Of a DNA stretch of 64,000 bases, positions 3,001 through 15,700 are shown in pieces. The notes below the pieces were generated by a model, which was not told the origin of the DNA, searched no databases, and was given only the letters and a program-made list of their open reading frames with translations. Numbering within the stretch: the first letter of the stretch is position 1; every line of letters begins with the position of its first letter. The translations under genes and the position numbers were made by a program. The stretch is from Oculina patagonica (lineage: Eukaryota), in assembly GCF_052425735.1 (NCBI RefSeq), contig NC_135761.1, positions 39,990,001 through 40,054,000 of the forward strand, given 5' to 3'.

Positions 3001-3646
3001 AACTGCAAGTTACTCACCATACATAGGAATATGTTTTAAGCCAGTGTTGAAATTGGACCCGCGAATATATTTTTTTTTAACGGTTCACTGTTTTTGCCGC
3101 TTCGGCCGATTTCACACTCTCAGGCCAGTACCAAAAAATTACGGTTTTTCTGCTGCTGTCGATATCATTATCCGGATTTCGCCATTTGAACGCCTTCGAT
3201 AAGTTTAAAAAACCAATAGCTATGGTTTATTGTCAAAGTATTTATGATTTGGCTGCAAGTTGTATTCCTTTTAAGCGAGAGCCCAGGTAACATTTTTCCG
3301 TAGATTGTGTGACAGCCATAGAACACGAAGCCTTCAGCGTAGCCATCAAACCAAACCAAAATATCGCGTTGATTAACAGAATGTTGCCTTTTCTTCATGA
3401 ATACTTGCTTCTGATCCATAAAAAGCTTTCAGACATCCCATGAAAGAGTCCAGAATTCAGTAAACAACAGGGAAAACATTGTCGATCTTCGTGTGTTTGT
3501 ATAAACACTTCTGGACATTGGCACTAATTTTCGTCACCTTAAAGCTTGGTTTTGGTCCGTTTATTCGCCTGATAATTACGATCAATGTTACTTAGTCGCA
3601 TTAAGAGGTGGATGGCATTTGCTCAGCCGTTATACTGCCATAAGTA

Positions 3647-3747
3647 TAGCCTACGTGTAGCCGTACCCCCCCCCCCCCCCGAGGAAAAGCGGGAGGGGAA
3701 GGAACGTCTACGAAAACCTGGCGCCAATCGTGTTATGTGACGTCACA
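3647..3747 (+). repeat. Left TIR of AcademH element
   Basis: Reverse complement of 12659-12754; contains CCAAT and a TGTGACGTCACA palindrome at its inner end. Confidence 0.95.
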
Positions 3748-3836
3748 GTAATTTATGCAAAATATGTAAATAAATTACTTTACCCGCGAACCATTGTACG
3801 TGTGTACTATTGTCTTTTGAACTCATTTGCAATTCA

Positions 3837-12531: not shown

Positions 12532-12658
12532 CTTGCAATATCAGTTCCACTTAGGTCATGAAAATGAGGTAGAACTAATTTAAGCCAATCAGCAAACTCG
12601 AACGAATTGACCAGATGGTGAACCAATGAAAGGCCATTATACATTTTCATGCAAAAGG

Positions 12659-12754
12659 TGTCACGTCACATAACACGATTGGCGCCAGGTTTTCGTAGAC
12701 GTTCCTTCCCCTCCCGCTTTTCCTCGGGGGGTGGGTACGGCTACACGTAGGCTA
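12659..12754 (-). repeat. Right TIR of AcademH element
   Basis: Reverse complement of 3647-3747. Confidence 0.95.
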
Positions 12755-15700
12755 CCATAAGTAGCAACGATACTTTGGCGAAATCGTCACACAACCTCAT
12801 AAATCCTTGCGGGTAGACTGGGTATTAGAAAGGCCTGCCGAAATGAAGTGTTTGAAGGGGGGAGGGGGCGGTTGGGAAGCGGGGATGGCCTGCGGGCAGT
12901 GGCGGTGCTGATGTGTCACTTGTTTAAGTACAATTCTGATCTATATAATAATTTACAACAATTTTTCAAATTTTATAGTTTGTTGTTTATGAATTATCTT
13001 AACAATTTTTCATTGGCGACCTTTATTTCCTGTCTTCGATATGCTTGGCCTGCATCATAGCCAGTTTCCGAATAAAACTTTTAAAAATTGCTGATGAACG
13101 TAACACAATAGGCCTGGTTTTAAACTGCCCCATCTGGAAAAAAGGAATAGACTTTCCTTGCCATCAAATTATTCTTTTCTGTTTCTGATAGAGTGGTAAT
13201 TCAATAACCTGCAAACAGACAGGCTTATTTACTTTGTCGTGGGAATATGAGATGTTTCGCTTAGCTTCATAGAAGGAAAAACAAACAAAGGACCAGTGTT
13301 AACATATTGGAAAAGTACAAATGGATCAGCTAAGAACTGTTCCTGTTAGTTTGAAGAATAAATTTAAGTATTGGCATGGGGGTTAGAAGTCGCTTTGTAG
13401 CCTGACGTTCGTCTGAAGACGTACCTACATGTTATCAGGAAATTAAAACCAATTCGGAATTGACAACATTCACAAAATTAACAAAAAGCAGCCGCTACAA
13501 TGCAAGGTTAATAGGTACTTTGGGGAAGAGCTTCTGCGCAACTTCGAAATGGCCAATAATCAAGTCACTAAAAATAAAAAAAGCAGTTATAAATATTATC
13601 AAAATCGCATTTTACTAAAATTGACGTTTTGGGAAACGTCAAAATTAGTAAATAATTGTGCGATTTTTTATAACGTTTGTCACAGCTGTTTGTTTTATAT
13701 TTTTAACCAAGTTACGATGGCCTTAAACCAGGGGCCTTTTTGAAAATGACTACTTACGTTCATTTCAGTTAAACGTACTGAAGTTTATTGCGTGCGTTAC
13801 GCATAGTTTGTTGACATGTTTTTTTTTCACCAATTAGTGTCAAGGTTGGCCACAAGTTTTATCTCTGATTCTTGGGGAGGGGATACATTTACCCTTCTTT
13901 CAAATGTGGGGAGGTTCTGTCCCGAAGTCAAAAATCTTTTTTCTGTCATAAACCATTTTCAACAGGAAGAGTAATGCTACCGTATACCTTCGATAAAATC
14001 AATACCCTTTTTACAAACCTATAAAAGGAACAATGCATTTTTTGTCGTTTCTCAACTACATAGCCCCTTAAAACATCTTTAACAGATGAAACTACCTTTT
14101 GGTTAGTATGTTCCAGATATTTTGTATACTCATTACCTCATCGCATAAGATTAAATTATGGGAAGAGTTCGCGACTGCTGAGGCAATAGGCATGCAACGA
14201 GGATAAAACGTGAAATTCTGTCAACCGCCACCATGGGAGGTGGGTGGGTCGCAAAAGCTGGCCGTCGTGCCAGAGTACCGTTAAAATGACCACGTTTCAA
14301 GCGAAATGAGGAGATTTATACTCTTAGACCGCAAAGCATCAACACTGCAACAAGCATGCGCCGAAATGAAGAAATTCGGACATATAATTAACTTCTGCTA
14401 TGAACTAATTAATTATGCAGTAAGAATAGTGGCAGTCTTTGCTGCGCGTTTGTATACTCCGACCCGGGAAATGCCTACTCTTTAGGTAACATAATTACAG
14501 CCTCATAAAGGTACCCCTTTCGGGTGGAGCCTTTCTGTATAATCCATTATACCGTGCACCTACGTAGGCAATCCTAGAGGTCCTTTGTTTTTTACACGTG
14601 GAGGCTCCGTTTTCTTGAGGTCCAAATCCTTACCCTTTTTATACAATTTTTGACAGAAAAAGTAACCATTTTAACCTGCGGTTTATAATAGAAAATGGTA
14701 CCCCTTTCAAATACCTACAGGAAGGATACTGCATTCCTTTTTTTCTTTTGTTGTTGTTGTTTTTGTTGACGTTTTATAATGATATACTTCTTCAATGATT
14801 TATGTAATCGACGGAGATATTTTTGAAGGTCCTTTTATAAACTACACTAAAAGTTCTCTCTGCACTTTTATAATTGTAATTCCAACAGAAACGTATGTCC
14901 CTCCTGGAGCCTCCGTGTATCGTTTTCTGTAAAGAGTACCCCCCCAAGCCCCTCCAGTTTCCCAAAGGTAAACCTTCCGGTCACGTGGGAAACGTAACCA
15001 ATTGAAGGATAAAAATTCTCCTGAGGAAAAGCTAACAAAGCCTGTTTGTAAGTTTTGTAAATTGAATGAAATGGAAAATATAAGAAACTCATTTTTTGCC
15101 AGGAACGAAATTTAAAGTTGCTCTATTTCATTTCTCTACGTAAAGCATATACCGTACAATTGCTTACGTGACGCTGAGAACAACAGCTATTGTCCAAAAA
15201 GTTTTCCCCAAGTACCTGCTAAAGTTACGTTGCAGCGGCTGCTTTTTGATAATTTTGTAAAGGTTGACATCCGAATTACCTTTCTGATTACTTTACATGT
15301 AGGTACGTCATCAGACGAAAGACCGACTTCAAAGCAGCTGTAATTACCTTTCTTACCCACAATACTTGAACTTATTCTCTAAACTTACAGGAAAAGTTCT
15401 TAGCTGATCCACTGGTACTTTTCCAATTTGTTAACAACGGTACTTTGATTGTTTTTCTTCTTTGAATCTATTAAAAGCTAGACGAAAGGTCTGATATTCC
15501 AACGACAAAATAGACAAGCCTCTCTGTTTGCAGGTAATTGAATTACCACTCTATCACGAAACAGAAAAGAATAATTTGATGGCAAGGAAAGTCTATTCCT
15601 TTTTTCCAGATGGGGCGGTTTAAAACCAGGCCTATTGTGTTACGTTCATCAGCAATTTTAAAGTTTATTCGGAAACTGGCTATGATGCATGGCCAAGTAT

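Follow-up and report, generated by a model that had tools for sequence, protein, structure and literature searches.

A probable AcademH-lineage DNA transposon, recently inserted beside an uninterrupted copy of its target and carrying an intact RecQ-like helicase gene, in Oculina patagonica

Repair-type enzymes are carried by several lineages of DNA transposons, AcademH among them. AcademH belongs to the Academ superfamily and was described by Kojima (2020, Mob DNA 11:15, as cited in PMC10045372 and PMC10799480); in PMC10045372, citing Kojima 2020, target site duplications (TSDs) are given as 9-10 bp for AcademH and 3-4 bp for AcademX. The same paper states that this difference "seems related" to the helicase or the nuclease (PMC10045372). 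Among Kolobok elements, whose TSD is the 4-bp TTAA, different lineages independently carry RecQ helicases or nucleases, and KolobokH and Kolobok-1_CCri are those with a RecQ helicase (PMC9587614). Here we analyzed a 64,000-nt stretch of Oculina patagonica DNA (NCBI RefSeq assembly GCF_052425735.1, contig NC_135761.1, positions 39,990,001 to 40,054,000 of the forward strand; hereafter the window, numbered from its first letter), in which positions 3647-12754 form a 9,108-bp DNA transposon copy bounded by terminal inverted repeats (TIRs). It is highly probable that this is a recently inserted copy of the AcademH lineage, and that this reading, including the mechanism proposed below for its transposase and helicase, best explains the locus as a whole.

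The two TIRs, identified with a repeat finder and by direct alignment, span 101 nt at the left end (3647-3747, plus strand) and 96 nt at the right end (12659-12754, minus strand), and agree except for two mismatches and a poly-C run that is 5 nt longer in one of them. Directly outside them, the 9-mer ccataagta was read at 3638-3646 (plus strand) and found again, 9/9 identical, at 12755-12763 (plus strand). The near-identical ~100-bp TIRs and the perfect 9-bp TSD claimed in an earlier note on this DNA were thus both confirmed. The element termini are TAG..CTA. Following the left TIR inwards, TAGCCTACGTGTAGCCGTAC comes first, then the poly-C run, and last a cyclic AMP response element (CRE)-like site, TGACGTCA (3738-3745); the terminal 20-mer TAGCCTACGTGTAGCCGTAC had an expected count of 0.00 in dinucleotide shuffles of the window. 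This terminal motif is kept in two related elements, L003 (97-nt TIRs and a perfect 9-bp TSD, ctttcaccc) and L010 (94-nt TIRs and a TSD of 8-9 bp, one base being ambiguous), and the ends of all three elements have in common TAGCCT, a C-run, and GGGAACGTCT-like and AATCGTGTT motifs. At a further related locus, L009, no TIRs were found with the repeat finder.

The transposase gene lies on the plus strand and consists of four exons totalling 1,193 codons, separated by three introns that are all GT..AG and in phase 0, as expected from the note's description of a spliced gene with clean introns. Exon 1 (3837-4743) encodes a CxxC...CxxC finger (CILC at 3852-3863 and CRQC at 3988-3999) and a conserved N-terminal region, while exon 2 (5224-6591) encodes a tandem repeat and the first catalytic D, in FDNFD (6262-6276). 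The second catalytic D, in GDQLT (7075-7089), is in exon 3 (6943-7206), and exon 4 (7722-8765; stop codon at 8763-8765) supplies the catalytic E, which is part of LDLLLEFFN (8388-8414), as well as a helical insertion domain. DUF6589 was matched by exon 4 (E = 1.8e-34) and weakly by exon 3 (E = 3.7e-4). The three DDE (Asp-Asp-Glu) motifs are conserved across 24 homologues and are all intact in the window, and the long homologues are collinear with the exons, aligning only outside the exon-2 tandem repeat. Moreover, between the window and its 77%-identical relative L003 only the exons of the two genes and the element ends could be aligned, the introns and the spacer being unalignable, which supports the exon limits independently of RNA data.

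The fold of the transposase was approached via an AlphaFold2 (AF2) model of P0004, a 46%-identical homologue spanning the catalytic core (predicted local distance difference test (pLDDT) score 92, predicted template modelling (pTM) score 0.90). The best structural matches of this model were the P-element transposase and Hermes (Z 10.7 over ~300 residues), followed by ISCth4 (Z 7.9), Transib and RAG1 (Z 7-8). In the model, the D of FDNFD lies on strand 1, the D of GDQLT after strand 4 and the E on a late helix, which is the arrangement of transposases with an RNase-H fold. The element's transposase is accordingly modelled here as a likely RNase-H-fold DDE enzyme with a helical insertion domain.

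Two side observations concern the transposase sequence. The exon-2 repeat is a coding minisatellite in the linker that follows the N-terminal region and precedes the first catalytic D: an in-frame 39/42-bp tandem array (5343-6074, ~730 bp) of ~20 Pro/Gly-rich, GGISLGPVIPTPT-like units. Its unit number is altered in L006, a close copy described below (+141, -39 and -114 nt), and the array is ~600 nt shorter in L003. A C2H2 finger present in the insertion domain of most DUF6589 homologues is missing from the window family and a few others (7722-8765; alignment A3, columns 540-600).

The helicase gene lies on the minus strand and comprises two exons separated by a 614-nt intron (GTATGT..AACAG). 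Exon 1 (12531-12035), which ends in ...DEAHCISHW, encodes motif 0, the Walker A motif GYGKS (12355-12369) and DEAH (12049-12060), and matched the Pfam family DEAD (E = 5.1e-18); exon 2 (11420-10055) encodes motifs III-VI and the Zn-binding cysteines and, towards the C terminus, a helical domain and an acidic tail, and matched Helicase_C and RecQ_Zn_bind (E = 4e-5 for the latter). The uninterrupted 620-aa RecQ-like helicase announced by the earlier note is indeed intact and has all RecQ motifs, from 0, I, Ia and II to III-VI, together with the Zn-binding cysteines (motif 0, GYGKS, DEAH, TATAT, IYCQTR, VAFGMGVN, QESGRGGRDG and CCDNCSKNCSC), and the three Pfam families that the note had named for the element's proteins, DUF6589, DEAD and Helicase_C, were all matched.

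Helicase exon 2 was also modelled with AF2 (pLDDT 77); here the second RecA domain and the Zn module are followed by an all-helical domain (residues 300-385) and a disordered acidic tail. Compared with BLM, WRN, RECQ1 and RecQ, the model aligned with Z ~21, over RecA2 and the Zn module only (residues 1-270). No beta structure follows the Zn module in this model, and therefore no winged-helix (RQC) hairpin is predicted; furthermore, with E values allowed up to 10, no Pfam family, HRDC included, matched the C-terminal 165 aa. Many RecQs, but not all, have RQC winged-helix and HRDC domains. A loose structural alignment to a BLM construct that retains HRDC hinted at an HRDC-like helical domain, and on the model the helical domain of the helicase may be HRDC-like.

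The transposase and helicase genes are convergent, and each starts 190-225 bp inside one of the near-identical TIRs. A CRE-like (T)GACGT(C/G)A site is present at the inner end of both TIRs and precedes the start codon of the transposase by ~95 nt and that of the helicase by ~130 nt. This site is a palindrome, TGACGTCA in the left TIR and TGACGTGA (12661-12668) in the right one, and is found in the L003 TIRs too. The position of the gene starts together with the CRE-like sites suggests that the TIRs may be twin promoters of the two genes, and near-identical TIRs of this kind could co-drive transposase and helicase.

A full-length copy at another locus, with a different left flank, is L006 (GCA_044670265.1, contig JADOBR010015547.1). 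L006 and the window element differ by 62 substitutions over ~9.1 kb (0.7%). Divergence is 0.28% for coding sequence, the repeats excluded, and 0.74% for non-coding sequence. The coding changes were 10 nonsynonymous and three synonymous, a ratio roughly that of neutral decay after insertion. The helicase is intact in both copies, with five amino-acid differences, and L006 has its own private transposase frameshifts. Further fragments of the family, at 91-95% identity, were found in other public samples, and named relatives came from Dendronephthya, Actinia, Montipora and Paramuricea; in the rest of the window, neither the proteins nor the DNA of the element had a match (tblastn, blastn). On these comparisons the family is young, because L006 is only 0.7% different and the TSD is perfect. 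The earlier note had described the family as recently or currently active: the recent part holds on the same two grounds, whereas current activity is not borne out, both the window copy and L006 carrying private frameshifts and the empty site on which the note drew being paralogous (see below).

The frameshift of the window copy lies in the N-terminal finger. Relative to L006 and another copy, L007, the window copy has one additional C at 3960/3961, which throws the transposase out of frame at codon 42, inside the CxxC...CxxC finger: L006 and L007 have GATTTTCAAGTG at the position where the window has GATTTTCCAAGTG, and the N-terminal open reading frame (ORF; MSSFNCILCF...) and the next ORF (...YICRQCHG...) are in different frames. 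Intact relatives, including the 99%-identical P0282, read LANLDFQVYTLSEYICRQC without interruption, and LANLDF(Q/L)VYT is uninterrupted in P0282 and in P0271-P0276. Everywhere downstream of the break the transposase is open. As the cause of the frame change at 3957-3964, a short intron of 52 or 82 nt, running from a donor at 3930 or 3900 to an acceptor at 3981, would fit arithmetically in both the window and L003, but was rejected, since the intact relatives are uninterrupted and L006 and L007 simply have one C fewer. With its transposase frame broken at codon 42, the window copy is probably not autonomous. "Near-intact", the term of the earlier note, is correct. L003 has a frame-breaking insertion of its own, of ~8 nt (CCTCGTAT-like, at 17060-17080 of that locus) relative to the intact protein P0271; the breaks in L003 and in the window are independent and lie only a few bases apart in the N-terminal finger.

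The element sits in a ~4.1-kb foldback, made of two inverted arms of ~1.2 kb (3204-3646 plus 12764-13527, versus 15204-16419) with a 1.7-kb spacer between them. Arm identity is 95-99% at the outer ends, where the insertion site is, and 81-87% at the inner ends beside the spacer; no ORF of the foldback exceeds 103 aa, and the foldback itself may be an older transposon with long TIRs. In the other arm the target 9-mer is uninterrupted: ccataagta occurs once, at 15984-15976 (minus strand), where the sequences matching both flanks of the element abut. When 3647-12763 was removed in silico, one seamless inverted repeat of 1,233 columns resulted (3204..13527 versus 16419..15204, 89.9% identity). The single-copy empty site at 15976-15984 reported by the earlier note therefore stands as an unbroken 9-mer with matching flanks, but not as an allelic empty site: it is the paralogous arm of the foldback.

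This arrangement could also be read in the opposite direction, the element predating the inverted duplication and having later been excised precisely from one arm. The arms differ by ~10% overall, so that the duplication is old relative to the element, which was counted in favor of this order of events. However, exactly one 9-mer and no footprint are present in the empty arm, and DDE cut-and-paste excision usually leaves a footprint or both TSD copies behind. Moreover, the element is only 0.3-0.7% from a copy elsewhere while the arms are 1-19% apart, which argues for insertion after the duplication; we give late excision very little credence. A second alternative concerns the helicase, a bona fide RecQ-family protein, which might be a host RecQ gene or gene fragment captured between the TIRs, as cut-and-paste elements sometimes pick up host genes; it would then be a passenger and not transposition machinery. 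Against such a capture, the helicase has a DUF6589 gene beside it, convergent and with identical exon order, in five related loci spanning 42-99% helicase identity (L006, 99%; L003, 77%; L009, 44%; L010, 42%; and L004 of Dendronephthya gigantea, 42%). Between the window and L003, the ratio of nonsynonymous to synonymous substitution rates (dN/dS) was 0.13-0.22 in the helicase gene and 0.10-0.12 in the transposase gene, and dS was alike in the two (~0.7-1.6). The helicase was about equally near bacterial RecQ, WRN, RECQ5, BLM and RECQ1 (E from 1e-22 to 1e-16), no cellular paralogue being nearer than another, while its transposon-borne relatives matched with E as low as 1e-296. Furthermore, it lacks a predicted winged-helix domain, and its nearest Atlas clusters are from Cnidaria and Basidiomycota (taxa taken from the few members with a record), which is the range reported for AcademH. 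By sequence comparison, then, the two genes are co-inherited and under purifying selection across related families, and the helicase is an old, co-evolving component of the element and not a recent host-gene capture, because of the five-locus pairing, the dN/dS values, the equal matches to cellular RecQs and the much closer element-borne relatives. Host capture of the helicase deserves next to no credence.

It can further be asked whether the element belongs to another superfamily. TSDs of 9-10 bp and long TIRs are typical of MuDR as well, and ISCth4, of the IS256 family, is among the fold matches; a MuDR/MULE-like element with long TIRs and 9-bp TSDs might have recruited a RecQ independently, as KolobokH did, and RecQ has been recruited more than once, in KolobokH and in Kolobok-1_CCri (PMC9587614). 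This explanation is quite improbable: DUF6589 was the only Pfam match of the transposase, a search of the exon pieces with E values allowed up to 10 showing no MULE domain (Pfam MULE, DBD_Tnp_Mut), hAT domain or P-element domain; in fold, the P element and Hermes match best; the 4-bp TTAA of Kolobok (PMC9587614) is unlike a 9-bp TSD; and architecture and TSD length are as reported for AcademH (PMC10045372). The AcademH assignment of the earlier note is supported by the DUF6589 DDE transposase, the separate RecQ-like helicase inside the same TIR-bounded unit, the 9-bp TSD and the gene pair in the five related loci. Several points weigh against the assignment to AcademH and the reading built on it: the equation of DUF6589 with Academ depends on architecture, TSD length and taxon range; the splice sites of both genes are predictions from sequence, not from RNA; the fold evidence comes from the model of a 46%-identical homologue, P0004, not of the window protein; the additional C at 3960/3961 may be a mistake in the assembly; no copy with both genes intact was among the copies found, the transposase being differently frameshifted in the window, L006 and L003; and the step at which the helicase acts is our inference, the sequence being silent on it.

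If the AcademH reading is right, transposition may proceed as follows. The N-terminal CxxC...CxxC finger of the transposase would bind the TAGCCT...poly-C...AATCGTGTT motifs at the ends; the transposase would then excise the element by DDE chemistry, using a hAT/P-element-like RNase-H fold with a helical insertion domain, and integration would follow with a 9-bp stagger. The helicase would be an accessory factor that the element encodes for itself and needs in order to transpose efficiently. Most likely it would unwind DNA at the transposon ends, the target or the donor break, either for end or flap processing or to steer the donor break to homologous repair. It would thereby fill the slot of the XPG nuclease in the sister lineage AcademX. 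A stronger version, in which the RecQ is a mechanistic core component that sets the 9-10-bp stagger by target melting or channels the donor break into sister-chromatid homologous repair, seems to us unlikely; if the sister-chromatid route were true, a formally cut-and-paste DDE element would be effectively replicative. The CRE-like sites in both TIRs and the internal copies of the terminal 20-mer described below may have a bearing on this version.

To our knowledge, no function has been shown for any of the repair-type enzymes of DNA transposons, be it the RecQ of AcademH and KolobokH, the XPG nuclease of AcademX or the exonucleases of other Kolobok elements. In line with the earlier note, which considered the role of the helicase not established, we found no paper establishing a role for the AcademH helicase in the literature covered (the primary AcademH description lay outside it), and no experiment in PMC10045372 or PMC9587614. 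The element type, TSD length and gene content are already published, and the exact family is possibly catalogued already; as a discovery the element is ordinary and not surprising, and its value is that of a clean specimen with an uninterrupted target nearby. The note's view of it as a good substrate for testing a transposon-encoded RecQ is well founded, given its exact ends, known target, 9-bp TSD, supported gene models and intact helicase. Moreover, sister copies are only 0.3-0.7% apart, so that natural copies can provide a transposase free of damage. Thus the window family makes the question of what a transposon-encoded RecQ does practically testable.

Several further features were observed within the element and its relatives. 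Near-copies of the terminal 20-mer, with 2-3 mismatches, lie inside the element at 4970-4996 (transposase intron 1) and 11790-11809 (helicase intron), the latter delimiting, together with the right TIR, a 965-bp unit that contains helicase exon 1. Internal copies are present in L006, L007 and L008 as well, and L010 has an analogous one (at 11926-11945 of that locus), but L003 does not; such copies could serve as alternative transposon ends. Three short hairpin-like inverted repeats with 23-51-nt arms are located at 7238-7463, 9149-9333 and 9896-10046, within transposase intron 3 and the region that separates the stop codons of the two genes. At least that at 9896-10046 has a recognizable counterpart in L006, which aligns end-to-end with the window element (blastn), and all three may be old insertions of miniature inverted-repeat transposable elements (MITEs) in the family's master copy.

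At L005, on a 1.3-Mb contig, a left TIR and an intact 618-aa helicase (9842-11855) occur with no transposase within 10 kb, and genes with Pox_VLTF3 and Pox_A32 domains (13587-18039) begin 1.7 kb from this AcademH-type helicase. A viral origin of the L005 helicase was considered and rejected: in the tree it is nested beside the L010 helicase as its sister, and the match begins exactly at the AcademH TIR. L005 is therefore a truncated AcademH copy beside giant-virus-like DNA and not a viral gene.

Like cellular RecQs (E. coli RecQ, WRN, BLM, RECQ1 and RECQ5), the helicase of the element has the full set of helicase motifs and a Zn-binding module, and it shares their RecA2 plus Zn fold, but it has an all-helical domain and an acidic disordered tail in place of a predicted winged helix or a Pfam HRDC domain, as well as six additional residues in the aromatic-rich loop that follows DEAH...HW. 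The transposase, to judge from the modelled homologue, resembles those of hAT (Hermes) and the P element in having a DDE fold of the RNase-H-like kind, into which a large helical domain is inserted; however, identity is ~10%, there is no common Pfam family, and those elements have 8-bp TSDs and no helicase. KolobokH and Kolobok-1_CCri are likewise independent DDE transposons with a RecQ, the helicase of Kolobok-1_CCri also being on the complementary strand. They differ in their 4-bp TTAA TSD, RR..YY termini and transposase family, as opposed to the 9-bp ccataagta and TAG..CTA of the window element, and in KolobokH the helicase is downstream of the transposase domain.

In AcademX, too, a DNA-processing accessory enzyme travels with a transposase that is, by inference, of the same superfamily. 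That enzyme is an XPG nuclease and the TSD is 3-4 bp, whereas the window element has a helicase and a 9-bp TSD, and Pfam detected no XPG or other nuclease domain in any of its ORFs. With AcademH, the element has in common a DDE transposase and a separate RecQ-like superfamily 2 (SF2) helicase inside one TIR-bounded unit, a TSD of 9 bp where 9-10 bp are reported, the presence of TIRs, and, on weak evidence from few recorded members, relatives in animals (Cnidaria) and Basidiomycota where AcademH is reported from animals and fungi. No defining difference separates it from AcademH; specific to the family are its ~730-bp coding minisatellite, a transposase without the C2H2 finger, and the near-copies of the terminal 20-mer that lie within two of its introns.

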